55,773 bases of DNA, from positions 43,982,611-44,038,383 of the forward strand of contig NC_068988.1 of the NCBI RefSeq assembly GCF_001194135.2. Direction: 5' to 3'. A program made the translations under genes and the position numbers. The notes under the pieces are model-generated. The model searched no databases and had not been told where the DNA came from. It saw only the letters and a program-made list of their open reading frames with translations. The stretch's first letter is position 1; the number at the start of each line of letters is the position of its first letter. Below are positions 3,948 to 52,790 of the stretch, one piece after another. The stretch is from Octopus bimaculoides. Its lineage: Eukaryota.

Positions 3948-4334
3948 GGTGCAGGCATAGCTGTGTGGTATGAACCTTGCTTTCCAACCACTTGGTTCTG
4001 AGTTCAGTTCCACTATGTAGTATCTCAGGAAAGTGTCTTCTACTATAGCCTCAGGTCAAGCAAAGCCTTGTGAGTGGATTTGGTAGACAGAAACTGAAAG
4101 AAGCTTGTCATATATATTTATGTGTGTGTGTTTGTCCCCTACCACTGAGTGACAACTGGCGTTGATGTGTTTGCATCCCCATAACTTAGCAGTTCAACAA
4201 AAGTAACCGATACAATGAGTACCAGGCTTAAAAAAAGATAAGTACTGAGATCAATTCATTCAACTAAAAATTCTTCATGGCAATGCTCCAACATGGCCAC
4301 AGTCCAATGATGAAATCAAGTAAGAAAGAAAAGA
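3948..4334 (+). mobile_element. SINE family A, older copy
   Basis: Same head, centre and tail organisation, more diverged. Confidence 0.8.
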
Positions 4335-13390: not shown

Positions 13391-14469
13391 CTTCATATAT
13401 TCAGATATAACTGGATAATCACAATACAAATAATTATTTAATCAATTATTGATGAATATAAGACTGGTCTTTAATATAATACTAGTCTTTCAGATCTATG
13501 TTGTGATCATATGAGGTCGACCTTGATCCAACAGACATAAAGGTTAAAGTGTTCTGGTCATAACCATCTTGTCTTTTATTGAAGCATATTATATCTAAGG
13601 CCATATTATCTAGTGTCCTTTCTGCTTAAAGACAACAGCATACAATTTGAAGAAGACATGATTGCTATTTCTAGTTCTTTGTTAAACAAAGTAAGTAACA
13701 CTGGTTTTATAGATGTCAAGAATAGGGACCAAATCTGCTAATAATACAATAGTTTATAGATTGTCATCTTATCCGAGAGGAGAGGACAGTTCTCATTTAT
13801 CTATTCAACACCATGAATCCGGGGCTAAATAATAATCCTTAGAAAGATTCCTTTGGGACTGGATTCTTAGAGACATCAAGGTTTTACTGCACAGTAATAA
13901 TTATTGACTCTTCTTAGCTCTTCATTGGTTCCAGAGACATTTATATATTGGTGAAAATCCCTTGAGATCAAGGACAATAGCCATACATTTGGTGTTGAAA
14001 CCAGAGCAGAGCAAAATGACTAGTGGACTTTGATCTAAGGCTGAATATTCCCATAACATTCCCACATGAACTAATACTTATCTCCAATACCTAACAAAGT
14101 TAACGTAATGTAGAATCATTGTTTGTGTGTGCAACAAAACATTTCAAGCTAATGGAGCCTTGATCTAGTTTTCTGATCCACTAGAAATATGAACTAAATC
14201 TCTCTCAAAAACCAGCAGAGCACATTAGATAATGTAATCTTAAATGCATTATGTCTAGATAAAACATGGGATCATTATAACTGGAACACCTTTCATCATA
14301 AGTCAGTTTAATCACAGCTAACCTAAGCTAAACAACAATCACAATAAAACACCAGCAGTAGATCTGAGCTCAAAATTTCAGAGTAAATAGTCCAATAGCT
14401 CATCCACGCAGCCATTTTATCTCAACATCATTTTTTACTTGGAAAGACAGGATGTCAGTAGTTACTTAC

Positions 14470-20118: not shown

Positions 20119-20287
20119 GATGCAGACGTGGCTGTGTGATAAGAAACTTGCTTCCCAACCACATACTTCTGGGTTTAGTCCCATTGCATGGCCCCTTGGG
20201 AATGTGTCTTCTACTATAGCCTCAGGCTGACATCAAAGCTTTGTGAGTGGATTTGGTAGTAACTGAAAGAAGTCGGTTTTGTGTATG

Positions 20288-20553: not shown

Positions 20554-21796
20554 ATATATACAACGCATTATCATTAAAACTGTAAGATGAAAAGCTTAAC
20601 TGGTGAGAACAGGAGTCAAATCTGTGAATACAACAATAATGTTCTCTACTCAATATCTTGGAACTGGTTTTAGATAACAAAAATGAGAATCACAACACTC
20701 ATGCCTGTCTCAATGTAAGTTAATTGAGACAATGCCAACCATGAATTAATACAACCTTCCTGCTGAAATTTTCCCACCTTCAATTGGGCACTGGTCTAAC
20801 ACAGAACATTCACAGATCATTTTACTGACAACCAGATGAATTGAGGTAATTTAGAAAAAGTGTTCTGTACCAGAAATACAACAGAGATGATGTAAGATAA
20901 ATCTTCCTCTGCCTCTGGACAGAACATCATTTAATCATCATCATCATCAGTTTTAATGTCTTCTCTTCTATGCATTCATAGTGAGATGGAGTTTTTACTG
21001 AGGCAGATTTTCTACAACCAGATGCCCATCCTGTCACCCACCCTCACCTGTTTCCAAGCAACATAATATTTACCCCCATGGAAAATCACACTGCTTGTAT
21101 GACAATGACATTCATTTACAACTGCCATGCAATGTCAAAGCAAGGAGATAGACTCACACACATACACACAATGGGCTTCTTTCAGTTTCTGTATATCAGG
21201 CCTTCTCACAAGGCATTAGTCGGCCAGAGGTCACAATAAAAGACACTAGTCCAAGATGCCACACAGTGGGACTGAACCCAAAACCATGTGGTTGAGAAGT
21301 AAACTTCTTAACCACACAGCTATAAAATTCTCTAGAATATATGATACTCATTCCTTGGCATTTCAGCAAGATGAAACAATGTATAATGTTACAACTTTAG
21401 TTACAATATGTTCTACAACAGTTTCACTCATATTGGCATGGATGGATTGATTTATTGGTCAGAGCAAATATCTTTACATTTCCTATCACTCAATCAGAAA
21501 GTAAAAAGTGGCAAATTAGAGCATACAGAATTATGCCTTGCTGAGATGCAATGACTCTTGTAAGATTTGAACCTAGAACAATGAGGTCACTAGACTATTA
21601 TCTTAACCATGAAACCATTGAGCTTCTCAGATTAGTAGTAAATATATAAAAATAGGTACAGGTATGGTGGTGTGGTAGAGAAGTCACTATTTTCTTCATG
21701 TCTATAAAGGGTTTTGAGTTCAACGCCACTGAAAGTGTCTTCTACAATAGCCTCAAGCCTATCAAAGCCTTGCAAGTGGATTTGGTAAATGGAAAA

Positions 21797-26166: not shown

Positions 26167-26735
26167 NNNNNNNNNNNNNNNNNNNNNNNNNNNNNNNNNN
26201 NNNNNNNNNNNNNNNNNNNNNNNNNNNNNNNNNNNNNNNNNNNNNNNNNNNNNNNNNNNNNNNNNNNNNNNNNNNNNNNNNNNNNNNNNNNNNNNNNNNN
26301 NNNNNNNNNNNNNNNNNNNNNNNNNNNNNNNNNNNCATGTATTTGTATTTATGTACTTGAGTATATTTCACTGATGAAGGTAGAGCATTTATGCAAAGCC
26401 AGAAATCCAGGATTTGAAATTATCTTATTATTTTTACTGGTTTATTTGGTCTTCGTCTTCGCTAATCGTGCCTTGCGGACATTTATATATATATATATAT
26501 ACACACACACACATATATGTGTGTGTTTATGTATGTGCAGGAGTGGTTGTGTGGTAAGTAGCTTGCTTACCAACCACATGGTTCTGGGTTCATTCCCATT
26601 GTGTGGCACCTTGGGCAAGTGTCTTCTGCTATAGCCTCAGGCCAACCAAAGCTTTGTGAGTGGATTTGATGGAAACTGAAAGAAGCTGTCGTATATATGT
26701 ATGTATGTGTGTGTATATGTTTGTGTGTCTGTGTT
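25965..26735. mobile_element. Two partial SINE-A heads in head-to-head orientation (25965-26128 minus; 26535-26735 plus)
   Basis: Reverse-complement head ...GGACTGAACCC...ACCACACAGCCATGC and forward head GCAGGAGTGGTTGTGTGGTAAG, separated by (TA)n and a gap. Confidence 0.75.
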
Positions 26736-36852: not shown

Positions 36853-37226
36853 AGACGTGACTGTGTGGTAAGAAGCTTGCTTCCCAACCATATGGTTCCT
36901 GATTTTCTCATACTGCGTGGCACTTTGGAGAAGCGTCTTCTACTAAAGCCGACCAAAGCCTTGTGGGTGGATTTGGTACATGGAAACTGAAAGAAGCCCA
37001 TTGTGTGTGTGTGTGTGTGTGTGTGTGTTTGTCCCCCACCACCGCTTGACATCCGGTGTTGGTGCATTTATATCTTCGTAACTTAGCGGTTCAGTAAAAG
37101 AGACCAATAGAATAAGTACGAGGCTTTAGAAACAAAGTACTGAGGTGGATTCATTCGATTAAAAATTCTTCAAAGAGGTGTCCCAGCATGGCCGCAGTCT
37201 CATGACTGAAACAAGTAAAAGATATA
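36853..37226 (+). mobile_element. SINE family A (full length)
   Basis: Head GACGTGACTGTGTGGTAAG, (TG)n, canonical tail. Confidence 0.85.
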
Positions 37227-37884: not shown

Positions 37885-38115
37885 TCTCATTCGATGCTGC
37901 AGCTGCGGGATGGAAGCGGCCTCGTGGCAGGCCCCGTACTAGATGACTGGACGTGATTGGGCAAGATCTCCAAAGACTCGACGTCATGCAGAGGGGCTGG
38001 CACAAGACCGCTAACAGTGGAGAGCACTGGTAGACCTGGTCGGCTCTACGCATAATGACGTCTTTGGGGCCGCTAATCTGAGATGACCCCAGCCCTATCA
38101 AGCAGGACCATGAAG
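37885..38115 (+). mobile_element. RTE-clade LINE 3' end fragment
   Basis: FDAAAAGWKRPRGRPRTR*LDVIGQDLQRL...AQDR*QWRALVDLVGSTH, the typical RTE ORF C-terminus. Confidence 0.75.
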
Positions 38116-40149
38116 CAAGCAAAACAGCAAGTACAAAGAATTTTCACATTTCCTATTTTTAGTCGATTTGATTTATTATTTCAACATTTCTCTTTTGTGT
38201 GTGAAAGATCCCAAACGCATAACGTGCCACTGCCTAACGTTTGGTGCCCCTGAACATGTAACTCCCCATCATCTCCTCCAGTATGAGATACTCCAGGTGA
38301 CTGCTGGAGTTGTTGATACATTTGGGGCTGCTCTGTGTTCAACGTGCAGCAAAGCGCGAAAATCCAGACCAAGACAGCAAAGATTTGGACAGGAATATCG
38401 TTCCACATCATGACCGATTATTCTCATGGAGATGCTGGAGGGAGGAGGTTCTGTCATATTAGCTCTTGGCATCGTAAATCATCCACCTGTCTCAAATGTT
38501 ACATCAATGCACATGGACGTATAACGTTGAGCAGTCAAAATGAAACAATCAGCATGCCTGTTTGTATGCATCTATGAGTTTGAGAATGTTCTAGTGATGT
38601 GTAACTGTGTATGTCTGTGAGTGTATATGGGTATGTAATTATGTAATATGTGTGTTTGTGAATATCCAAGTAATGTGTGTAATGAATGTATGTATCTATG
38701 ACATATGTGTGAATGTGTGTGTTTTTATATATGGTATGTGTTTTGGTGAGTTTACGTGACATATTTGCGTAAATGCACCATGTATGTTTGTGTGCCTATC
38801 CAGGACGTGTCTATGTGATTTCTGCATCTATATTATGTTTCTGCACGAGTTTATATAGCACGTAAAAGGATAAGCGAGTGAAAGAGGGGAAAGAGAGAGA
38901 TAGAAAGATATATAAAAACGAGCAGAGAGAAATGCATCAGGTAAACTAAACGAATATAATTTTTTTCTCACGTCTCATGAAGAAAACAGGTTAACACCCC
39001 TACATCAAAGGGCGTTAATAGGTTCGCCCAGTATTATATATAAAAACAGCTGTCTCTAAGGCAAGAACAGACGAAGATAGACAAAGAAAAGGCAAATCTA
39101 GGTAAAAGTTAAACAAACGCCAACAAGAAAATGAAACGAGTTGTTTCTGTCGTTTGCTCAAAAGCGATTGAGCGGGCTATGATGTCATAATTCAAAGTGA
39201 TTTTTGACCTTTCGGTCAGCAAAGTAAGAAATAAGGAAAGAACAAAAATACAGAGAAGGGAAAAAGAAAAAAAAAAGAAAAAGGGAAGAGGATAGACAAT
39301 CTAGTATGTGATTTGAACTTCACTTTCTCCGAGAAAAAAGAAAAAAAAAGAGAGGGAAACAACCGCGGAAAGGAAGAGAGAAGGAAGAAACTGAAGGAGT
39401 GAAAAGGAAGAAGAATCTATTGCTGCAGCTGCTGCTATGATAGTTTAGTTGACAAATCCCTCTGAAGCTACGAATCAGCCAAAACTATTTCGTGATCAGC
39501 ATCAAGCAATACTTGTGATAAAAATTTTAGTAGCAATATAAGAACATGTTGCAGAATGGTTTTGTTAATAATTTCCAAGGTGAGACCCATTCCCACACAC
39601 TTTACCTATTATTGTTCCGCAGCCAATAAAATAAAGTACCGGTCAAGTACAGGGGACGATGGTATCAACTAACCCTTCCCTTCAAATTGATTACCTTGTA
39701 CCTAAATCAGAAACTATTATTATTATTATTATCATTATTATTCAGTAGACTTATTTTTATCGCGTGTACTCCACTTTACTACGAGTGCAGCTCTGTGTGC
39801 CTTGGGTACGTGCTGTTTTTTTTTTTTTGATTATTTGTTCGGTGTTACAGTACCTAGCAGTGTTATTTTCCGTATGTTATATATATATTTTCTAACCAGG
39901 ATTGGGTTATGTTTTTGTTTGCATGTTTTTGATCACACCTTGACACAGTTTTTGGCTTTCAGGTTCCACATTCAGGTTACTTCTATTTACGTTCTGGGTT
40001 CAAATTCCACGAAAGTCGACTTTGCCTTTCACCTTTCTGGATCGATAAAATAAGTACCAGTCACGTATTGGGGATCAATATAATCGACTTCCCCCTCCCC
40101 TCAAAAACTGCTGACCCTAGGCCAAAATTTGAAACGAACATTGTTATTA

Positions 40150-40520
40150 TTGACGAGTCCCCTACACAAGCTCTTTTAGCCACAGACACTAAGGAGAGAA
40201 AAGTTTAGTCAAATCTTTCTCTGCTCACTGACTGTGGCGAAAGAGTTATATGGCAGATTAGTCTTAAAGGTTTGAAGACAAGCATTTTTCTATCTAGCTA
40301 AGTTTTCAACTTCTTCAAGTACCAGACAAAAAGGAAGGTGAAGGTAAAAAGGAAGGTATTGCTTTGTTTATCGAAAGGAGGATAGAAGTCGCAAGACTGG
40401 TTATTCTAAATGGGTCTGTTCTGAGTATGCTTTTCTAAGTAAGAGGGGGGAAAGTGATAGAGGGCACTTTTGATGATTTGGAAATGGCAGAGAAATCTGG
40501 GGTTTTTTAAATGGAGTTTC
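40150..40520 (+). mobile_element. L1/Tx1-clade LINE 3' end fragment (old)
   Basis: FFKYQTKRKVKV / ALFIERRIEVARLVILNGSV resembles the 32.8 and 33.3 kb ORF2 ends. Confidence 0.5.
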
Positions 40521-43163
40521 TTCCAAATAATATAAGGAGGACTTCCCCACTATTGAGGAATTTTTCTTGTTAGAATTTTTGCTGGAATATCATTTTGATA
40601 TCTTTTGTTAGTTTTTCCATTAATACTGATTTCCCTGTGATCGATAAAAGCCCCACCTTTTATTTGATCTATTTCGTCCTTTATATTGTTCTCAATGTTT
40701 TGGGCCCTTGTAGTCCAATATAAGAAATTAATTATTGCTTTGTTTTGAGTTCCAATGCCACCGGGGTCGAGTTTGCGTTTCATCATTTCGGAGTTAATAA
40801 AATAAGTATCAGTTGAGCGCTGGGAAGTCGATGTCATCGTCTTATCCCTCTCAGAAATTGCTGGTCTTCAGCAAAAATTTGAGACTATTATTATTATTAT
40901 TATTATAATCATTGACTACTTTTTAATTACTGAAAGTTTCGTGCCTAGCAGCAATCGAAAATAATCATGATGCTGTTGGCCTTTTTCCGAGACAAGGTGC
41001 TGCAAATTTCCATTAAGCATTAAACATCCGGCTGAACCTCGATTTCCGGTTGACATTGATGCCTACATCCCTTCAGTTAATGGTATATCCCTTCTAATTT
41101 ATTAAGCAGAATTTTTTTCCATTATGGCATTTCGATATCATTCTGACTTAGAATTGTCTATAGTTAGGAGACGAATTCTCTTCAGATGATATGCCATCCA
41201 ATGTTTACTGTCAAGTTTGAAACTTACAGTAATGCCAAAAGTAGTCAAATAACAATGAATATGTGTGTGTGTGTGTGTGTGTGTGTGAGACTAAAACAAA
41301 TCTGAGCATTTCCAAACGAATTATTTTCAGTACGGCTATAGCTGATTTTGACATTATTTTTTTATTAAGTAATTCATCGTGCTTATTTATTTCTAAGAGT
41401 TTTCTACCAATAGCTGGTCTTTCATTTAAAGCTAAGGAGAACGTTGAAACAATTTCTATTTTCTTCGTTGTTAAATTTGAGGGAGAAAAAAACTACACTT
41501 ACATTTATGCCCAATTTCTCTAAAACCTCATAATAATTGTCAGCTTCATTTGAAGAAAGGGTAGATACTTAGTTGCTATAAAATTTCTAAAATATAACGG
41601 GTGTGTAGTTGAAATTCTACTCGATTTACATAAGTTGTTAATTCGAGTTTCTATAACGTTGATATTTACATGTCTTCTCTAAGTTTAATGTAACATAAAA
41701 TGTTGTCTATACTTATTAGTGGTGGTTATATTGTCGAAACGTAGCTTAGATGTGGTTTTTAGATCTTTCCTAATCTATTTTTGGACTGGACATTGTACTA
41801 AAAGGAAAGGCCATCATCTCTAATGTCATGCTTTTAAGGTTTTGAATTTTCTTTTGGGTATATTTACAACATATATTCCATTCAAACCACATACTTCAGT
41901 CTCATGAAAGCGAAGCTCATACTGACATCAAACAGATCGTTGTATGTATGTTCGTACTCTTCTGTTACTAATTATATGAAAGCTTCCGGTAAGGACGGAC
42001 CTGGTTTCTAACAAAGATGCAAAACTACATCATTGGCATGTAGATAAAAGTAGTCATATGTTAAAAATTTGAGAAAAGTCTTGCATACATTTACTTTTCC
42101 ACTTACAGATTGTATTTGTAATGTGCGTGAGCTGATTGGTTTCTTTTTCTGAAGATCCTATCTTTTAGATTGTCCCTTCGGCATATTACTCACAAAACCA
42201 AGAGCGCCAATTATTATTAGAATAAATGCGAATTTGCGATTTAGGCATACAGGCTAAAGGCTTCAAACAAGTTGCCCATAGTAATACTTTTGTCTTTGAT
42301 TTTCGAAGAGATATTCACATCAGCAGAGCCGCTGACCTCTATGACGTTACATACTTTTCTTGTCCGTCGCAAACAATGGTATCCGTCCTGTTATGCTTGC
42401 ACTTGGTAGAAGTTTTGATTGGAATGTTCTGCCTATTCTGCCTAGTTCCAATCACTGTTGTGAACATTTTAAAATCACGACTGATAAGAAAGATTTTTTG
42501 TACATACATACATACATACATACATTTACAATCTGTAAACGGAACAGTAAAACTATGCAAGACTTTTCTCAAGTTTAAAATATGACATTGGGTTCGTCAT
42601 ATACATTCCAACGATGGAGCTTTGTATCTTTGTTAGAAACCTGTTCCTTATTCAAAGGAAAAATTTGAATAATTAAAAAGAGAAACATACATACATACAT
42701 ACGTACGTACGTATGTATGTACGTATGTATGTATGTATGTATGTATGTATGTATGTATAAGTTTCAGGGCTAACTAAAAAAATTCCGAAGTGCTAGAAAC
42801 TTATATTTTGGTGATTGAATGGGAGTTTAACAAGAGGCTGGAGAATACGATTAGGCTCACATAACATGCAAATTATTCTGGAGACTAGCTCAGCCAAGAG
42901 AAATGTTAGTAATCTTGCCGGCTGGACATTGTGTTATAATATCGGTGAAGATCTCGGGACTATACCTCCTTTGCCCTTTCAGGTTCGTGGAAAGAATCTG
43001 TCGATAAGAAATATCAAATTCCGGGTTCTTTTATGACCTCTGAACTAGAATTACAACGTGGTTTTAGAAATGATGGATATCTCTTATGGACTCCCTCCGG
43101 GGAAGAGGAGCAGATAAATATCTATGAATTATATAGTATTACCTATGTAGCAATTTGCTGTGG

Positions 43164-43188
43164 ATGAGACAGAGCAGTTTTACATATT
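43164..43188 (+). CDS. PIN-domain gene, putative first coding exon (MRQSSFTY-C)
   Basis: ATG 43164 with in-frame TAG upstream at 43134; strong donor gtaagt at 43189 in phase 1, matching the phase-1 acceptor at 43326. Kozak context is weak; ATG 43434 is an alternative start. Confidence 0.55.
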
Positions 43189-43326
43189 GTAAGTTGTGTG
43201 TGTGTGTGTGTGTTTTGGGAGAAATTGAAAGGGAATAATTTAATTCTTGTAAGTGATCCGATTTTTTTTCTTGTTTGGTTTGATATTTCTTCCTTCTCAT
43301 TGGACTTTGATGATGATATTTCTCAG

Positions 43327-43837
43327 GCACATTATCAAGACTACAATCCAGATTGCGCGAGCGAAGGAGGAAGAGGAGAAAAAGAAGAAGAAATCGAGCA
43401 AAATCACAAAGAAGGAAAAGGCATATTGCCAGAATGCGACAGGCATGTACCATACCTTTCTCTCCTTTCCGCCCTTTCCACTCACGTTGGTCTGTAAGAG
43501 GCTATAAACATTTAGCATCACGTCCTACCATCATATCACGACCAACGATCCGAAGGCGGAAGCTTGTACACGGCCGTGGAGGATTTGACGTTCATCATAG
43601 AAGACGTAAAATAGATGGCCAGAATCATCGTCAAGCTTGTTCATTTACATTCAGACCTAGGTTTCGTCATCGTCATTATCGCATGAATCCTCTGAAACAT
43701 AAACTATGCAGGATGGATCACATCATATTTTGGGATATAGACAACTGGAGTAGGTTCTTTGAAAAGCTGAAGTTTCTCTTGCCTCCGAATACCTTCGTAT
43801 GGGGCTTTCATAGTACCCAATGGAACCAGCCAACCAG
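43327..43837 (+). CDS. PIN-domain gene exon 2: Arg/Lys-rich region and first part of the PIN-like domain
   Basis: Acceptor gatatttctcag, donor gtaatg; open frame TLSRLQSRLRERRRKRRKRRR...HIIFWDIDNWSRFFEKLKFLLPPNTFVWGFHSTQWNQPT(R); 511 nt. Confidence 0.88.
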
Positions 43838-43984
43838 GTAATGCATTCGTGTTAAAGCTCTTTAAGTGTGAGAGGGTGTCTGGCTAAATGAAATGCAATT
43901 TTTGGCTCTGTCTCTTTAAGCTCTGTGCTCAGATCTCGCTGGAATCAGAGTTATTTCTTTTAGCTCATTTCTATTATTTTATTT

Positions 43985-44435
43985 CTTTTATTTGTTTCAG
44001 TCATTTGACTGCGGCCATGCTGGGACACCACCTAGAAGGATTTTAGTCGGACAGATCGAGCCCGGGACTTATTTTCAAAGCCTAGTACTTATTCTATCAA
44101 TCTATNNNNNNNNNNNNNNNNNNNNNNNNNNNNNNNNNNNNNNNNNNNNNNNNNNNNNNNNNNNNNNNNNNNNNNNNNNNNNNNNNNNNNNNNNNNNNNN
44201 NNNNNNNNNNNNNNNNNNNNNNNNNNNNNNNNNNNNNNNNNNNNNNNNNNNNNNNNNNNNNNNNNNNNNNNNNNATATATACGACGGGCTTTCAGTTTCC
44301 GTCTACCAAATCCACTCACAAGGCTTTGGTCAGCCCGAGGTTATAGTAGAAGGCGCTTGCCCAAGGTGCCATGCAGTGGGACTGAACCCGGAACCGTATG
44401 GTTGGGAAGCAAGCTTCTTACCACACCTGCGCCTT
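43985..44435 (-). mobile_element. SINE family A, antisense, in intron 2 of the PIN-domain gene (spans a gap)
   Basis: Reverse-complement tail TTTCAGTCATTTGACTGCGGCCATGCTGG and head ...GGGACTGAACCCGGAACC...ACCACAC. Confidence 0.82.
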
Positions 44436-45015
44436 TAGATAATGTAAATTACTTAGGTGATAAATGTGTTCTCCTCATTTGTATATGTCCTTTGGATTCT
44501 GGGGATAAAGTTGGGCAGTTGTTGTGCTGATAACAGCTATTGAACCGGAAACGTAAGTCCACGCCTGTTCTTTTACAACTAATCAATAAACTTCTCCCTT
44601 TCCTTAATGGCATGCCAATTGTAGAAGATGCTTGAATCTTGCGATTACCTCCACTTCTCAAATGGAGCTTGTATGGCTATAGTTTGGGCAGGAACTGTTT
44701 AATTTCCTCATCCAGACGGTTCGTACCTGATATGTACGCATGCGCGCGCACAAACAGATGAATACGTGTTGGTATATGTGTGATATAAGTGGGTATACAT
44801 ATGTTCGAATATATATGCATATATACATGTATATGCATATATATATATATAGATATGCATTTGTGTGCGTTCATGATTCAGTTTTATCAATCGATCGATT
44901 GATCTACAGAAAATATAGGAAACGACCCTCATAACGATATCTACTCCGAAGCCGAAACAAATCAACTACCAAAGGAAAAGAAATAAAGACGTACGTATGT
45001 ATATGTAACAAATGT

Positions 45016-45340
45016 GAAGGAGCGTGGCTTAGTGGTTAAAGCATTAGGCTCACGATCTTACGATCGTGAGTTCGATTCCCGACTGCGTTGTGTTCTTGAG
45101 CATTATACTTCATTTCACGTTGCTCCAGTCCACTCAGCTGGCAAAAATGAGTAGTACCTGTAGTTCAAAGGGCCAGCCTTGCCACGTTCTGTGTCACGCT
45201 GAATCTCCCTGAGAACTACGCGTTAAGGGCACGCGTGTCTGTTGAATGCTCAGTCATTTACACGTTAATTACACGAGTAGACTGTTCCGTAAATCGGATT
45301 AATTGGAACACTCGCCGTCGTACCCGACGGAATGCCATTT
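45016..45340 (+). mobile_element. tRNA-headed SINE family C (related partial copy 35581-35705)
   Basis: GGCTTAGTGGTTAAAG (A box) ... GAGTTCGATTCCC (B box), then GTGTTCTTGAGC...CACGTTGCTCCAGTCCACTCAGCTG shared with the 35.6-kb copy. Confidence 0.7.
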
Positions 45341-45413
45341 ATGTCATGTAGTATATATATATATATATTTTCTTTACGTGCATACGCGTATATTATAGCT
45401 GTATATATGAATG

Positions 45414-45455
<42 letters not shown>

Positions 45456-46093
45456 NNNNNNNNNNNNNNNNNNNNNNNNNNNNNNNNNNNNNNNNNNNNN
45501 NNNNNNNNNNNNNNNNNNNNNNNNNNNNNNNNNNNNNNNNNNNNNNNNNNNNNNNNNNNNNNNNNNNNNNNNNNNNNNNNNNNNNNNNNNNNNNNNNNNN
45601 NNNNNNNNNNNNNNNNNNNNNNNNNNNNNNNNNNNNNNNNNNNNNNNNNNNNNNNNNNNNNNNNNNNNNNNNNNNNNNNNNNNNNNNNNNNNNNNNNNNN
45701 NNNNNNNNNNNNNNNNNNNNNNNNNNNNNNNNNNNNNNNNNNNNNNNNNNNNNNNNNNNNNNNNNNNNNNNNNNNNNNNNNNNNNNNNNNNNNNNNNNNN
45801 NNNNNNNNNNNNNNNNNNNNNNNNNNNNNNNNNNNNNNNNNNNNNNNNNNNNNNNNNNNNNNNNNNNNNNNNNNNNNNNNNNNNNNNNNNNNNNNNNNNN
45901 NNNNNNNNNNNNNNNNNNNNNNNNNNNNNNNNNNNNNNNNNNNNNNNNNNNNNNNNNNNNNNNNNNNNNNNNNNNNNNNNNNNNNNNNNNNNNNNNNNNN
46001 NNNNNNNNNNNNNNNNNNNNNNNNNNNNNNNNNNNNNNNNNNNNNNNNNNNNNNNNNNNNNNNNNNNNNNNNNNNNNNNNNNNNNNNNNNNNN

Positions 46094-46125
<32 letters not shown>

Positions 46126-46134
46126 TATATATAT

Positions 46135-46292
46135 ATACGACGAGCTTTCAGTCTCCGTCTACCAAATTCACTCACAAGGCTTTGGTCAGCCCGAGGTTAT
46201 AGTAGAAGGCGCTTGCCCAAGGTGCCATGCAGCGGGACTGAACCCGGAACCGTGTGGTTGGGAAGCAAGCTTCTTACCACACCTGCGCCTTT
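46135..46292 (-). mobile_element. SINE family A head, antisense
   Basis: Near-identical to 44278-44435. Confidence 0.82.
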
Positions 46293-46559
46293 ATATATCC
46301 TACATTATATCGGTACAGTTCGATGCAACCCCGAAAAACTGGTTTACCAGTCAGCATTAATAATAGGCTGTGGACAGCATAATGGTATAGGGACTTTATT
46401 TGCATAAATTCAGTTGTGTGTGTGAAATATACATGAAGATAATCACACACACACACCAGAAAACTAAAACTTTCCTATTTGATAAAAGTTTTATCTGGTT
46501 GAAGAAATCCGACACTTCAAGCATTTTCAACTTGTGTCAGTGGTCGTACCACACTTTAG

Positions 46560-47420
46560 ATACATGCGCTCTTGTTATGCAAGACATTCGGAAACAAAAA
46601 TTCAATATCGCCAATATCAGTTTCTAAGGAGATGACAGATTAACTGAAAACCACACCTGTCAATAGTATACATTTGATAAGTTTAGAAAGGAACTTAGTA
46701 GCGTTTGCAAACAGCTGGGATTAAAAATCACAATCAATATCAAACTTAAGACAGCTAATTTATTGGACGTCACCCTTAGACAACAATATGCATAAATCTT
46801 ATGAAGAACTAAAGCATAAACAGGGATTCTTGGTACAAGGGTCTCCAAACTCTTTACTCTTTTCTCGTAGAGAGAGTTTTGTTAGAAAATGAATTCCGCT
46901 ATAACAGCACCTCTCCTAATAGCTGTTTCAAAGATGGGATTAAATGCATATCTCACCCACCAACTCTCAATATGATATTAGGTCCCATAATGCAATCAAG
47001 CTCACTGTCATTTTTCTTTAAGTATAAAAATAAATATCGATAAAATATTCCCAGCATGTATTGGGAGTTCTGTTCTAAAACCGTGTCAATAAAAGTTGCT
47101 TGAAAGTGACCTACAATAGTATTATGAAAAACATATTCTCTCACAAAATACTAACACCCACAACTGAAATGCACTTATAGGTCACACGGAAAGATTTTTA
47201 CATATACAAAGGGTCAGAATGTCTCAAAGCACGCTATAGCTTGCATGCAAAGCTGTTAGAGTTCTGGCATTCTACATCATCATCAAATTTGTTCAGAAGA
47301 ACCTCTTAACCTTGTGACAACGGATGGCTACACCACCATTATATACGATGCCATACCAAAAAGAACTGAGAACTTTGTTCTTATGTAAATAAATCTTTTA
47401 ATAATTATGTTATGAGTGAA
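46560..47420 (+). mobile_element. Decayed Penelope-like retroelement (RT thumb / GIY-YIG region)
   Basis: DKFRKELSSVCKQLGLKITINIKLKTANLLDVTL resembles the PLE motif ..GLKITIEAN...NFLDVTL; downstream sequence has many stops. Confidence 0.55.
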
Positions 47421-47920
47421 ACTTTGAAGTAACAAAATCACTATCCACCTTCTGCTGTATCAATATATATAAGATATATATATATAGCAATAAGAAAATA
47501 GAGGGGAAAATGTGGTACTCATCAACTTGTAGACACTGTACTATGTCAATTTACCTGTTTATTTTTCAACCAAGAGGACAATAAAAACAATATACAAACA
47601 CATATGACACACTGTCATATCAGCAATTAAAAATTAAAAAGGACATTTAGTGATCGAAGAAGGGACAAAGTCTTACAGCTGTTTCGGCCTAGGGGTGACA
47701 TGCTTCATTCTATCTATCTAACTCCAGTAAGCTTGAGTTATTGATAGATTAAATGGATGTAACAGAGGTACATGTATGATTCTCTAGTCCTCTTCAGAGA
47801 TTTACAAATTTCATGCACTATATTGGATAGATATTATCCCTTATTATCCCAAAGTCCAGCAGTATATTCGATAGATATTATCCCTTAGTGGGTTGAATTC
47901 ACAACCCCTAACTTTCTTGG

Positions 47921-47961
<41 letters not shown>

Positions 47962-48430
47962 GGATAAAATCTTTATAAGGTTAGCCAGCATGTAATAAAC
48001 CATATAGGTAACAATTAATACAAGTATATATAATTATATAAATGTAATTATAATAAGAAGGGTGTTAATGAATAGCGCCACATGCAAGAAATAGACGCCA
48101 AATGGCTCTCAGAATTAGCACGGATTGAAAAGAAAGGAAAGAAATCGATCTATGGTTAAACTTTTTTTTTTNNNNNNNNNNNNNNNNNNNNNNNNNNNNN
48201 NNNNNNNNNNNNNNNNNNNNNNNNNNNNNNNNNNNNNNNNNNNNNNNNNNNNNNNNNNNNNNNNNNNNNNNNNNNNNNNNNNNNNNNNNNNNNNNNNNNN
48301 NNNNNNNNNNNNNNNNNNNNNNNNNNNNNNNNNNNNNNNNNNNNNNNNNNNNNNNNNNNNNNNNNNNNNNNNNNNNNNNNNNNNNNNNNNNNNNNNNNNN
48401 NNNNNNTATATATATAATTTTTTCTTTCAG

Positions 48431-48530
48431 GTGCCTGGCGTTTCACCGGCTGATGTCTACTGGGGGATTTCACAAGAATTATCAGAGTGGCAGGACGAAA
48501 AATGCAGCAGATTTTGCCATGATGCTTCAA
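48431..48530 (+). CDS. PIN-domain gene exon 3
   Basis: Acceptor tttctttcag, donor gtgaga; (R)CLAFHRLMSTGGFHKNYQSGRTKNAADFAMMLQ; 100 nt, phase 2 to 0. Confidence 0.9.
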
Positions 48531-49829
48531 GTGAGATGAAACCCGACTCACGGTTATTTCTTTTGTTGCTATTTCATGATCACTGTATGGGCGCGAGTTT
48601 GATGTTTCGTTAAGAAGTTTGTTTTGCATCGTAGTAAAAAACTTTATCAATATAACATAATTGTGTGTGAGTGTATGGTTAAAAAGCTCTTCTGTTTTGC
48701 CAAAGACTGAAGTATGTTATGTGTTTTAAACATAAGTCTATAATGGGTATTTTTCCCCGAACGACAGCTGCTGCCTTTGGCTTTTTGCATGCATACATAC
48801 TTTAAGTATGCTATATTGAGAAAGTGTTTACAATAGAGCTCGTTCTATTGCATAATTCAAATTCGATTTCGCTCATGCAGGCCTTTGCAAACCAATGTAT
48901 GTTTCATACTGTGTCTCTATATACTTCAGGCAAGCTGATCCGATTTTATTTCAGAAGAGACGCGTGTACGTCATACTGAGAAGCGAAATACGTATTTGTC
49001 GCTCTCACAGTTTCTTCCGGGACGATTTCGTTTCGCCTAGCTCTGAAGTATGTTTCCAACGTAATACATCTATAAAGGGATTTTTCCTGGACGAAAACTG
49101 CAGCCTAGCTTTGGCTTGATCAAACTTCTGTGAAAAATTTTGGTTGATGGCTTAGTATAGAAACGCGTAGAGAGAGTCATTCCTTTTCTTAAGCAATGTA
49201 CTTGATTTGTGGTCTACTTCAATACCGCCGCTTAGCCCCTGAGCGTCTTTAGCGGAATACACTGTTGTAAAAGTTCTCGAAAAAGGTCAGGTATTCTGAC
49301 CTTTTCACCTCTGGCTAAGTCACATAACAAAAGGAATAGAATAATATAACTAATTGCATGAGGTGGCTGTAGGACTGTCTGGTTCGGAGATAAAATAGAT
49401 GTAATAAAATTAAGTGCTCAGAACATATTTAGCACCCAGCTTCCCCCAACCTTAAAACATTCAATTAATCGCTAGATCAGTGGTTCCGATGCGACCTTTA
49501 TATTTTCCTCATCTCCAAATACAATAAACACATACGTTCGTCTTTTTACATGGTGAGAAACGTATTTCACAGACAATACTATTGGCGAACAACAGCAAAA
49601 ACTGCGCATGACATCCTGCAACCTTTTTTTAAAAAGAGAAAGTGTATATATTTATGAAGAGCTACGTGGTCTTGTTTATGAGTTTTGTTATTTACTAGGA
49701 AATGTATTTTGATGCATAGAATTGGTAATATTACTGTAATTCGTTGTGCTTTTGTTTTTATTCGCTTAAGATCAGTTGGACTTCTGCTGCTGATACAGGA
49801 CTTTGGATTCTAGCTTGAATTTCTGCCCC

Positions 49830-49921
49830 TCAAAAGTAGTATCCATATAATAGTCGACCCCATAAATTTAACCTTAAAACATGGCCTAAAAATTTCGATT
49901 TTTAAACGAGTATATACGGTA
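49830..49921. mobile_element. Terminus of a pogo/Tigger-type MITE
   Basis: Ends ...TTTTAAACGAGTATATACGGTA, the reverse complement of a TACCGTATATACTCG-type TIR. Confidence 0.45.
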
Positions 49922-50387
49922 GATATGGTTGCTACGACAGAATTGGTTTGGGAAGGACTGCTTTATATCAGTAGTTGGGGTGGGGTGATTGTGGAGGATA
50001 TGTGCTGCAAACAAGTGTTACACTATGGGAAATTCTAAGTCTCCGCGTTCTAAACAACCATATCTGCGATGACATAGGTAGCAAACTATGTCAGTCTGGA
50101 CTCTAGTAGCATAGCTAGTGAGGATGGAGGACGGCCCTCCTCGTGTGACGCATTTATTTTCGAAGTTCAAATCCCACAGACTGACCTTTCGTCTTTCCGG
50201 GATTGATAAAATAAAATACCAATAAAGTACTGTGATTGATTTACTCTATTGTTACTGTCCTCCAAATTAAAGATCTTGCGACCTCCTGAAACTGTGTCTT
50301 TAATTTCTCAATGTGTCCATTCCTTTGCTACCAAACTTAGCTGTTTATTAATTTTATTGTTAAAACTGACTTTGCTTTTCTCTGTAG

Positions 50388-50570
50388 ATTGGCAAGATGG
50401 ACGAGCTGCTTCCGAAACATGTCCAATTCACAATATTTTCTGGCGACAAAGGGTTTCAAGAAGCTCTTCATCAAATGAAGGATTCAAGAAGAATGATAAG
50501 AATAATTAATCCACACGTTCCTGGCTGGCAAGCAAGACTTCATAATATTTTGAACAGGACCATTCCTTGA
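50388..50570 (+). CDS. PIN-domain gene exon 4 (terminal)
   Basis: Acceptor gcttttctctgtag; IGKMDELLPKHVQFTIFSGDKGFQEALHQMKDSRRMIRIINPHVPGWQARLHNILNRTIP*; 183 nt. Confidence 0.9.
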   Translation: MGKMDELLPKHVQFTIFSGDKGFQEALHQMKDSRRMIRIINPHVPGWQARLHNILNRTIP

Positions 50571-52790
50571 ATCCGATGGCACAGGCCCAAGAAACTTACT
50601 ATATCGGCACCAAATACCTACGGGTTTTTTCATGATTTCTCAGCCTTCATTATTTTCATTTTCAAAAGGTTAAAAAAACAGAACCCACTCAACGGCTTCG
50701 TTCTTTATTTATTGTTTTACATGCTCATGTATTAAAAAAAACATCGATTCACACACACACAAACACACACTCACGCGTGCGCGCACATTGAGAATTTTTC
50801 TTAAAATTTACTGGTTGTGTCTGGAGGAAGGAGCAGCCTATGGTCCTTGTAACTTTTCTGAGGCCAGTGAGGTCGACACCATTAATGTTCCATTTAAGCT
50901 ATGGCTGGTCAACACTTGCAAGAAAGACAGGAGTAAGGAGAAGATTTCAGAAGACCCATGTGCTGTAGGAGTACTGGACTTAATCATTAGTGTGGGGCTG
51001 GTGGTAGGTGGATGCAAAAAGGGTAATGAGAGATGGAGAGAGAAGTGGTCTCTCTGAATGGTGGATGTGCAGGACCAGTCATTCCGAGGAACAGAGGCCA
51101 TTATAGTAATGGTAGAAAAGACAGAGCGAGGGAATACGGGTGTGAGTCAGAGACTAGTGATGAAATCTAGGATGTTGCTGAATGTCCTCCTATGCCAGCA
51201 ACGAGGACTGCGCTGGTGATATTTTATACTAAAAGTGACGCTTTGGTGAGACCTGGTGGTGACAGCTGTGAATAGTGCAGTAGCAACCACACACACACAC
51301 ACACACACACCATACATTGAATTTTCTTTAGCTGAAAAATCCTGCAAATCATTACTCTGAGTTACACATTACCGATTGTCATCGACAATAAAGCAGTTGG
51401 AAAAGTACAAAGATATTTAAAGGCAGTGGAACGAATCAATAAAGAAATAATATCTATTGTTGATTGGGTAAAGGACGCCCATAATTTTGGAAGTGAAAAG
51501 AATTCTTGGCGGAATCATACAAACGTCAAAAATTCTAAGTAAATAAACAAATATAATGTTGGAACGTCGATAGGGAAAACGGAGAAGTAAAATAATGGAA
51601 AAAGGAAGAGAGGAAAAGAAGAAAGAAAGCGAGGAAAGTGGGAAAGAAATGTGAAAATGAGAAAGAACGAGGAAAAGAATATGTCCACTAGTTAGAAACA
51701 TATCGATCACATAGTCACTTAAAAAAACAAAAAAAAACCCCAACACATGACACAAAGCGAACACACAAGACCTACTGAAATACAAAAAAACTAGCACACA
51801 GACACATGCACTGTTTCACAAAATCATTCAGATGTTACATTATAACGTTCTAAAGAACAGGGACAGAACAAAACTAATAGGTCAATATCTGGTCCAAGCG
51901 TTAGAAAGCAATGAAAGCAGCCACTGAGAAAAGTCAGATGAAAATTGGCGAAACAAGGAAAGGTCAAAAGTTCAAAACTCAAGAACAAAAATGAAATAAT
52001 AGGAAGCTTTAAAATCTAACACATTCCTAGTAGAACATGTTACATCGTCAACTGGGTAGCAACAGTTTGAAAAATAAATATTTCGAGACCTATCTGCAGA
52101 GATTTAAAAGTTTCGATTTAATTAAAAATTTAGATATGTCACTTTATAATTCAAAAACTGTTAGAACGCTTTGCATTTGATACTCCTGACAAAAGTTATA
52201 CATATTTCCTAACACATGGATAAACTTATTTACCATATTTTAAAATATATTTCGAAATACTTACTTTCGCAATCGTTCATACGATTTTTCCAACAGTTCC
52301 TTTGACATCCAAGAGTGTGGGCGTCCTTCATCCAATCAAAGAAGATTTATTTCTTGATCGATACCTCTAATAGTCTATAATTTTCTATTGTTCCATTGCT
52401 TCATGTTATGACGTTATGCTTTCCAATTATAATGTGTGGCCATTGTTGTGACTGTAGTTATATCTACTCTAGCAGCCACAATATTTTCTTGGTATCAGAC
52501 ACAGTGTATCTCTTCTCTACCAAAATGGTAATACACCGCTTCGTCTATTGTGCTATCACTGATAGCTCTGCAAGACACCGACTTTGAACCGTCTATCTTG
52601 ACTGTAATTCGAACTCCACTATAAAACGCAACTGACACTTAACTCCAACTGAGAACTTGTACAACGACTGACACACGACTCTCTCTACTGCTTGACGTCG
52701 TCTCACTTGAGAGGGGTGTACCATTTCCACTACAACATCTCCCCTTTTAGTTTTTTTTCTTTTTGGAAAGCAAATAATTTTATTTTTCTT

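Follow-up and report, generated by a model that had tools for sequence, protein, structure and literature searches.

The closest described system to the gene reported here is the C-terminal PIN-like domain (Pfam PIN_11, PF18479) of ZNF451/ZATT. Conserved across metazoans, PIN_11 has what looks like an intact nuclease site; ZNF451/ZATT, the protein that contains it, is of current interest in the repair of TOP2–DNA crosslinks. We analysed a 55,773-nucleotide stretch of Octopus bimaculoides DNA (NC_068988.1, positions 43,982,611 to 44,038,383 of the forward strand; hereafter the window, in whose coordinates positions are given) that holds a short gene encoding a PIN_11 protein. Comparison with octopod ZNF451 genes indicates that this gene is an octopod-specific partial duplicate, made at the DNA level, of the last three ZNF451 exons. 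Its structure, family membership, paralogy and origin, taken together, are shown with high confidence. New here are a corrected first exon, the demonstration that assembly gaps in the locus are harmless, the recognition that the gene arose by partial duplication in octopods and carries a new basic tail, and the anatomy of the isoforms.

The octopus domain belongs to the same family as that of ZNF451/ZATT, with which it shares all the invariant Asp, Asn, Ser-Gly-Asp and Pro-His positions as well as intron positions and phases. Unlike ZNF451/ZATT, the short gene lacks tandem SUMO-interacting motifs (SIMs), the coiled coil, C2H2 fingers and the C-terminal ubiquitin-interacting motif (UIM), and it occupies a separate locus and carries a novel 133-residue tail. 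Three marks of a ZNF451 orthologue, namely tandem SIMs, C2H2 fingers and being the single orthologous locus of the species, are all absent.

The nearest solved fold is the NYN domain of MARF1 (PDB 5YAA, 6FDL), a Mg/Mn-stimulated endoribonuclease with an active site of D358, D426, D427 and D452 (PMC6294520; also PMC6217404). The Asp clusters of the two proteins lie at equivalent topological positions, and the spacing of 26 residues between D209 and D235 in the octopus protein is that between D426 and D452. Identity is, however, only about 14%, the NYN profile scores under its cut-off, and PIN_11 is a minimised variant; MARF1, unlike the octopus protein, acts alongside RRM and LOTUS domains. The bacterial family PIN_7 (PF18475), described as the closest relative of PIN_11 (Matelska et al., PMC5499597), gives the next-best Pfam match at 28–30 bits, but this falls short of the 34-bit gathering threshold, and PIN_7 likewise has no known function.

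Small finger-less PIN_11 proteins also occur in the bdelloid rotifers Adineta and Rotaria (~232 residues) and in the acanthocephalan Pomphorhynchus (195 residues), and such proteins are therefore not unique to octopods. These uncharacterized proteins resemble the octopus product in having a short N-terminal extension and a single PIN_11 domain. They are only 31–45% identical, however, stand apart from the octopod short clade in a neighbour-joining (NJ) tree, and give no sign of sharing the octopod gene's origin or its Arg-rich tail.

A spliced and expressed gene with four coding exons

The locus is a real, spliced and expressed gene of four coding exons on the + strand, at about 39089–50678. 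Its parts are as follows.

39089–39579, +: exon 1, with about 457 nucleotides of 5' untranslated region (UTR) and coding sequence at 39546–39579 (MLQNGFVNNFQ and the first base of Gly12)
43327–43837, +: exon 2, 511 nucleotides, encoding the Arg-rich tail (residues 12–133) and the first third of PIN_11
43734–43736, 43740–43742 and 43743–43745, +: codons of D148, D150 and N151, in exon 2
43838–48430, +: intron 2, holding all three assembly gaps and SINE-like (short interspersed element-like) repeats
48431–48530, +: exon 3, 100 nucleotides, encoding the middle of PIN_11, with D209 at 48510–48512
50388–50570, +: coding part of exon 4, encoding the last third of PIN_11, with D235 at 50445–50447, the NPH motif and the stop codon TGA at 50568–50570

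The 3' UTR reaches at least 50678. Exons 2–4 had been placed exactly in an earlier note on this DNA, and its canonical splice sites, phases and quoted peptides were all reproduced. The acceptors of these exons (ttctcag/, ctttcag/ and ctctgtag/) and their GT donors are canonical, and phases 2 and 0 match. Exon 2 ends at the donor CAG/gtaatg in phase 2 (AG/G, an Arg codon across the junction), and its length and splice sites are the same in Octopus sinensis; exon 3 lies between the acceptor ttctttcag/G and the phase 0 donor CAA/gtgaga. Once spliced, exons 2–4 are 100% identical to RefSeq XP_014768937.1 and XP_052826038.1. A contiguous full-length PIN_11 match across three exons lying 2–5 kb apart rules out chance.

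Expression was seen in an RNA contig (L001) from the meta-transcriptome SRR3401912, which is described as octopus (PMC11662614). The contig maps to the window as four blocks (39089–39580, 43372–43839, 48428–48555 and 50387–50678) and joins exon 2 directly to exon 3, confirming the predicted junction 43837/48431. The orthologous locus of O. sinensis (L002) has exons of 34, 511, 100 and 183 nucleotides, keeps every splice site and retains an intact open reading frame (ORF) of 275 codons.

The predicted number of four coding exons stands, but the first of them differs from that proposed. Coding starts in 39546–39579, 3.6 kb upstream of the region first noted, and the product has 275 residues, not 272. 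Exon 1 is defined by the first block of the RNA contig and matches the N-terminus of RefSeq isoform X1. Its donor is AAG/gtgaga (phase 1), in-frame TAG TAG codons lie directly 5' of the ATG, and O. sinensis keeps the exon with equal length and an equal donor. XP_014768937.1 (UniProt A0A0L8HW07, 275 residues) begins MLQNGFVNNFQG, and the product of the RNA contig begins MKNMLQNSFVNFQG, so exon 1 is kept there as well.

The first exon originally proposed, 43164–43188 on the + strand (MRQSSFTYC), was rejected as intronic: neither the annotated isoforms nor the RNA contig use it, and a 22-nucleotide (GA)n insertion in O. sinensis puts it out of frame. Immediately 5' of exon 2 (43160–43215; L002 ~14200–14290) are (GA)n and (GT)n microsatellites, the (GA)n being 22 nucleotides longer in O. 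sinensis, and this candidate falls within them.

Three runs of N (44106–44274, 45456–46093 and 48172–48406) interrupt the assembly, all within intron 2, and none touches an exon. The third stops 24 nucleotides before the exon 3 acceptor, whose polypyrimidine tract and AG are read sequence. The gap-free O. sinensis locus is collinear with the window and has at the corresponding places ~155, ~200 and ~68 bp of microsatellite, repeat or intron sequence, and the RNA contig bridges the gapped intron. Because the PIN_11 match is unbroken, exons 2 and 3 are joined in RNA and the O. sinensis locus is collinear, no coding sequence is concealed in the gaps.

Although described as hidden, the gene is already public as O. 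bimaculoides LOC106868266, with four RefSeq isoforms, and in UniProt entries that include A0A0L8HW07. UniProt names the products 'ZNF451 PIN-like domain-containing protein', and RefSeq names isoforms X2–X4 'E3 SUMO-protein ligase ZNF451'. The annotated products are as follows.

X1, 275 residues: the full, putative enzyme form
X2, 228 residues: begins at an internal Met
X3, 148 residues: alternative first coding exon at 38083–38130 (+), encoding MTPALSSRTMKQAKQQ, then a GT donor
X4, 140 residues: begins at the second ATG of exon 1 (39556), in the other frame
UniProt A0A0L8HW15, 217 residues: ends ...MMLQVR

A tblastn search placed the first exon of X3 on the window at 38083–38130 with 100% identity, and splicing this segment to 43327–43442, exon 3 and exon 4 gave the 148-residue X3 exactly; X4 was likewise reproduced from the window. 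Both isoforms splice out of exon 2 from a conserved GC donor within it, after 43442 (ACAG/gcatgt), rejoin the PIN frame at exon 3, and are without strand beta-1 and the DxDN motif. Human ZNF451 isoform 2 also lacks strand beta-1 (Matelska et al., PMC5499597). The 116 nucleotides at 43327–43442 are consequently annotated in two frames, one basic (RLRERRRKRRKRRRNRAKSQRRKRH..., X1) and one acidic (ASEGGRGEKEEEIEQNHKEGKG..., X3 and X4), the choice of frame being set by the start codon and by the conserved internal GC–AG intron at 43443–48430.

A second exon 3 donor lies 22 nucleotides downstream of the first, at 48552/48553 (CACG/gttatt), and is conserved in O. sinensis. It is used by the 217-residue A0A0L8HW15 and by L001, the sole octopus RNA contig recovered; its use shifts the frame, and the protein ends at ...MMLQVR with loss of the Asp of the SGD motif. 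Splicing from this donor may be regulated, as an unproductive or truncating event.

The PIN_11 domain, the basic tail and their possible function

The 275-residue product (pI 12) consists of a 133-residue, Arg-rich N-terminal tail of low complexity followed by one complete PIN_11 domain. In the Pfam profile search PIN_11 scored above NYN, as had been predicted (E = 1.8e-37 vs 0.06). The PIN_11 match reached 128.5–130.8 bits against a cut-off of 26.6 and covered profile positions 2–118 of 118 in one stretch, crossing both exon junctions, while NYN (PF01936) gave a partial match of 14.2–16.5 bits against a cut-off of 24.2 (E = 0.012–0.06). PIN_11 and PIN_7 were the only Pfam matches of the full protein, and its kinship to NYN is at clan and fold level only.

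Residue conservation was taken from an alignment of 46 sequences, whose named sources include a cnidarian, a rotifer, a mollusc, a hemichordate and amphioxus. Alignment columns D15, N18, D76 and D102 are invariant, and conservation reaches 90% or more at D17, S100, G101, F105, R117, P124 and H125. All of these are kept in the octopus protein (the key ones are D148, D150, N151, D209, S233, G234, D235, P257 and H258 in the numbering of the 275-residue form), and the three acidic positions that had been singled out beforehand proved to be family-invariant residues, all intact. For PIN_11, Matelska et al. (2017; PMC5499597) describe a predicted active site with 'at least four conserved Asp'; D148, D150, D209 and D235 are present here.

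An AlphaFold2 model built with the 46-sequence alignment (predicted local distance difference test, pLDDT, 95.3; predicted template modelling score, pTM, 0.90) showed alternating strands and helices. When the model was compared with the PDB using Foldseek, the top five matches were all MARF1 NYN chains, with a probability of 0.99–1.0 and template modelling (TM) scores of 0.50–0.54. The domain is thus predicted to adopt a minimal NYN-type PIN fold, in agreement with the NYN/PIN-like fold expected from its motifs. A free-standing 142-residue PIN_11 domain with very high model confidence is convenient for expression, crystallography and nuclease assays. Its value in this respect is limited, as the domain can be excised from any ZNF451, and other finger-less PIN_11 proteins and the family label are already catalogued (RefSeq, UniProt).

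The tail (residues 1–133) is 26% Arg and only 2.3% acidic, with a pI of 12, and to judge from its composition it is presumably disordered. It matches nothing and shows no homology to ZNF451. The proposed absence of zinc fingers and SIMs was upheld by the Pfam result and by three further observations. No C2H2 pattern was found in any frame of the 55.8-kb window except one low-complexity chance match in intron 2, no SIM core ([VIL] cluster) was found in residues 1–133, and the 5' UTR of the RNA contig, some 470 nucleotides long, contains stops in all three frames.

Arg-rich tracts serve as nuclear and nucleolar targeting signals and as non-specific binders of nucleic acid. The best overall explanation of these features, and one that we consider somewhat probable, is that the protein is a nuclear, metal-dependent endonuclease derived from a ZNF451 PIN domain and a basic tail. 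The tail would provide nuclear or nucleolar targeting and non-specific retention on nucleic acid; the Asp cluster D148, D150, D209 and D235 would bind Mg2+ or Mn2+; and the domain would then cut endonucleolytically, with alternative splicing yielding truncated products whose active site is incomplete. Whether catalytic competence is retained, as the conservation suggests, we judge to be evenly balanced. Substrate and cellular role are speculative: by analogy with MARF1 NYN the target would most probably be single-stranded RNA, and single-stranded or flap DNA is kept as a possibility because ZNF451 acts at TOP2–DNA adducts.

Constraint on the gene was estimated as the ratio of nonsynonymous to synonymous substitution rates (dN/dS) by the Nei–Gojobori method. 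Since the pair with O. sinensis gives only 39 substitutions, the more distant octopus represented by the RNA contig was added; its ORF is intact once 22 nucleotides are removed, and its dS is ~0.36.

O. sinensis, whole coding sequence: dN/dS 0.42, 39 substitutions
More distant octopus, PIN part: dN/dS 0.36, 85% amino acid identity
More distant octopus, tail: dN/dS 0.47, 59% amino acid identity

These values indicate purifying, though not strong, selection. Synonymous divergence is itself uneven along the gene: between exons 2–4 of the window and the RNA contig, dS is 0.20 in the PIN-coding part and 0.56 in the tail-coding part, and the corresponding values against O. sinensis are 0.049 and 0.13. 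Constraint on synonymous sites, overlapping signals or effects of the tail alignment are possible causes of the lower dS in the PIN part.

Several points weigh against a nuclear nuclease. The literature reports no cleavage by any PIN_11 domain, that of ZNF451 included, and the sole paper naming the family calls its function unknown (PMC5499597). Deletion of the ZATT PIN-like and UIM region had a modest effect on repair of TOP2 cleavage complexes (TOP2cc) in Xenopus extracts (bioRxiv 10.64898/2026.07.14.738426). The structural matches to MARF1 have weak Foldseek E-values (6e-3 to 2e-2, at TM scores of 0.50–0.54), and neither phmmer with the domain nor hmmsearch with the 46-sequence profile found anything significant among PDB sequences, MARF1 reaching only E = 0.31. 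Spatial clustering of the four Asp residues is an assumption, and nuclear localization is deduced solely from composition. Three of the five annotated products (X3, X4 and the 217-residue UniProt form) lack part of the active site. Finally, dN/dS values of 0.36–0.49 amount to moderate constraint only, with few substitutions in the closest pair.

Among the alternatives, a non-catalytic interaction module fares best, although we consider it unlikely. In that case the short protein would compete with or regulate full-length ZNF451 or its partners, binding the same ligands through its PIN-like surface and cutting nothing. Such a role would account for the lack of any reported PIN_11 nuclease activity, and there is a precedent in the binding of p300 by ZNF451 through its PIN-like domain, in work cited by Matelska et al. 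(PMC5499597). X3 and X4, which lose strand beta-1 and DxDN but keep the rest of the domain much as human isoform 2 lacks that strand, would fit as well. On the other hand, invariance or near-invariance of the four Asp residues and Asn151 over 46 sequences, and their retention here, is difficult to account for unless the domain binds metal or is catalytic, and a tail of 26% Arg is better suited to holding nucleic acid than to recognizing one particular protein.

A more elaborate form of the nuclease reading, which we regard as doubtful, is that in the octopod lineage the surplus ZNF451 PIN domain became a free-standing nuclear or nucleolar nuclease with a de novo Arg tail, and that GC–AG splicing toggles between the enzyme and an acidic-headed putative inhibitor without strand beta-1. 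If true, it would amount to an RNA- or DNA-processing activity that is specific to cephalopods and regulates itself.

Slow decay of a functionless partial duplicate, transcribed mainly into truncated products or products prone to nonsense-mediated decay, appears improbable. The dN/dS values would allow it, as would the truncation of several annotated isoforms and the use by the sole RNA contig of the +22 donor, which leads to a premature stop. Against decay, the 275-codon ORF, splice sites and exact exon lengths are equal in O. bimaculoides and O. sinensis, and the ORF is also intact in the third octopus at a dS of ~0.36 after removal of the 22 nucleotides. An Argonauta orthologue is recognizable, all invariant residues are kept, and dN/dS is below 1 in both halves of the protein.

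Relatives and origin of the short gene

When 1.84 billion representatives were searched exhaustively with HMMER, only 165 relatives were returned; a word-indexed homologue search was insensitive, giving 2 matches by protein and 22 by profile. Within the set of representatives the short gene was found only in octopods, with copies in O. sinensis and Argonauta besides that in the window. Separate from it, octopods have a full-length ZNF451 (781 residues in O. vulgaris and O. sinensis, 752 in Argonauta hians) with N-terminal SIM-like cores (IIILDSSDSE, IIVVSDSSDCE), C2H2 motifs and a C-terminal PIN_11; the O. vulgaris protein has four SIM cores in its first 45 residues. In O. sinensis the short gene and ZNF451 are on different chromosomes (records of 107 Mb and 54 Mb). 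The separate ZNF451 locus was established in O. sinensis, O. vulgaris and Argonauta, not directly in O. bimaculoides.

Only in the PIN domain do the short protein and octopod ZNF451 resemble each other (47% over 125 residues, E = 2e-37). Within this domain, both introns lie at the equal aligned residue and in equal phase in the short gene and in O. vulgaris ZNF451.

First intra-domain intron, phase 2, O. vulgaris ZNF451: CCA AAG AG/gttagt...ttttcag/T GAT
First intra-domain intron, phase 2, window gene: CCA ACC AG/gtaatg...tttcag/G TGC
Second intra-domain intron, phase 0, O. vulgaris ZNF451: CTT CAT/gtaagt...aacag/GTT GGA AAG ATG GAT
Second intra-domain intron, phase 0, window gene: CTT CAA/gtgaga...tgtag/ATT GGC AAG ATG GAC

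The shared introns, together with the separate full-length copy in octopods and the fusion of fingers to PIN_11 in bivalves, argue for a partial duplication, and the introns rule out a retrocopy. The fusion is seen in the bivalves Mactra and Mercenaria, whose proteins carry the ZNF451-specific first finger (PF23101, Zf-C2H2_ZNF451_1st) and PIN_11, and in gastropod proteins named ZNF451 (Haliotis, Patella), which have C2H2 motifs by pattern match and PIN_11; it therefore predates the molluscan radiation. The duplicate lost everything upstream (SIMs, coiled coil and zinc fingers), while a new 5' exon and the basic tail were added. The topology of the NJ tree, in which the short clade adjoins that of cephalopod ZNF451, fits a cephalopod-specific origin, but its bootstrap support is only 17%; the tree was therefore not taken as evidence by itself, and the introns carry the argument.

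The earlier note had left open whether the gene is an ancestral form or a lineage-specific redeployment, and the same three lines of evidence favour redeployment. An ancestral stand-alone PIN_11 gene, older than the fusion to SIMs and zinc fingers, is very improbable. Finger-less PIN_11 proteins in rotifers, the acanthocephalan, amphioxus and a cnidarian would suit such an ancestor, and so would the restriction of zinc-finger fusion to 'higher eukaryotes' stated by Matelska et al. (2017; PMC5499597). However, bivalves and gastropods already combine fingers with PIN_11, octopods own a full-length copy with which the short gene has both intra-domain introns in common, and among the representatives searched the short gene occurs in octopods only. 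It is barely credible that the locus is a normal full-length ZNF451 orthologue with SIM and finger exons that were missed upstream or lie in gaps: the RefSeq name of isoforms X2–X4 would suggest it but was transferred from the domain match, whereas the window has no C2H2 beyond the one chance match, an in-frame stop precedes the ATG, the 470-nucleotide 5' UTR in RNA is closed in all frames, and O. sinensis and O. vulgaris have their separate 781-residue ZNF451 on another chromosome.

In Dreissena polymorpha, LOC127858457 encodes two tandem PIN_11 domains (246.8 bits, two stretches) and no zinc fingers; this is another lineage-specific domain rearrangement.

Repeats in intron 2 and the rest of the window

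Scans of the window against Rfam and for tRNAs gave no match, nor did a Pfam scan of its ten longest other ORFs. A SINE-like repeat, itself without tRNA or Rfam match, occurs in at least 10 copies across the window and in many at the O. sinensis locus. It is built around an internal (CA)n/(TA)n microsatellite, with ~140 bp in the left arm and ~155 bp in the right. Copies include the following.

43966–44105 and 44275–44430: SINE-like repeat, split by the first gap
46131–46286: SINE-like repeat
2768–2905: SINE-like repeat
3963–4117: SINE-like repeat
20134–20269: SINE-like repeat
21179–21317: SINE-like repeat
26549–26698: SINE-like repeat
36863–36993: SINE-like repeat, with others elsewhere

The gap at 44106–44274 lies in the internal microsatellite of one copy, and that at 45456–46093 abuts the right arm of another next to (TA)n; the position of these two gaps in or beside repeat microsatellites explains why the assembly broke there. 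At the place in O. sinensis that matches the largest gap (45456–46093), in the middle of intron 2, there is a 160-bp duplicate (L002:16753–16913), 95% identical, of the 3' end of exon 2 (TFVWGFHSTQWNQPTR) together with its donor and the first part of the intron.

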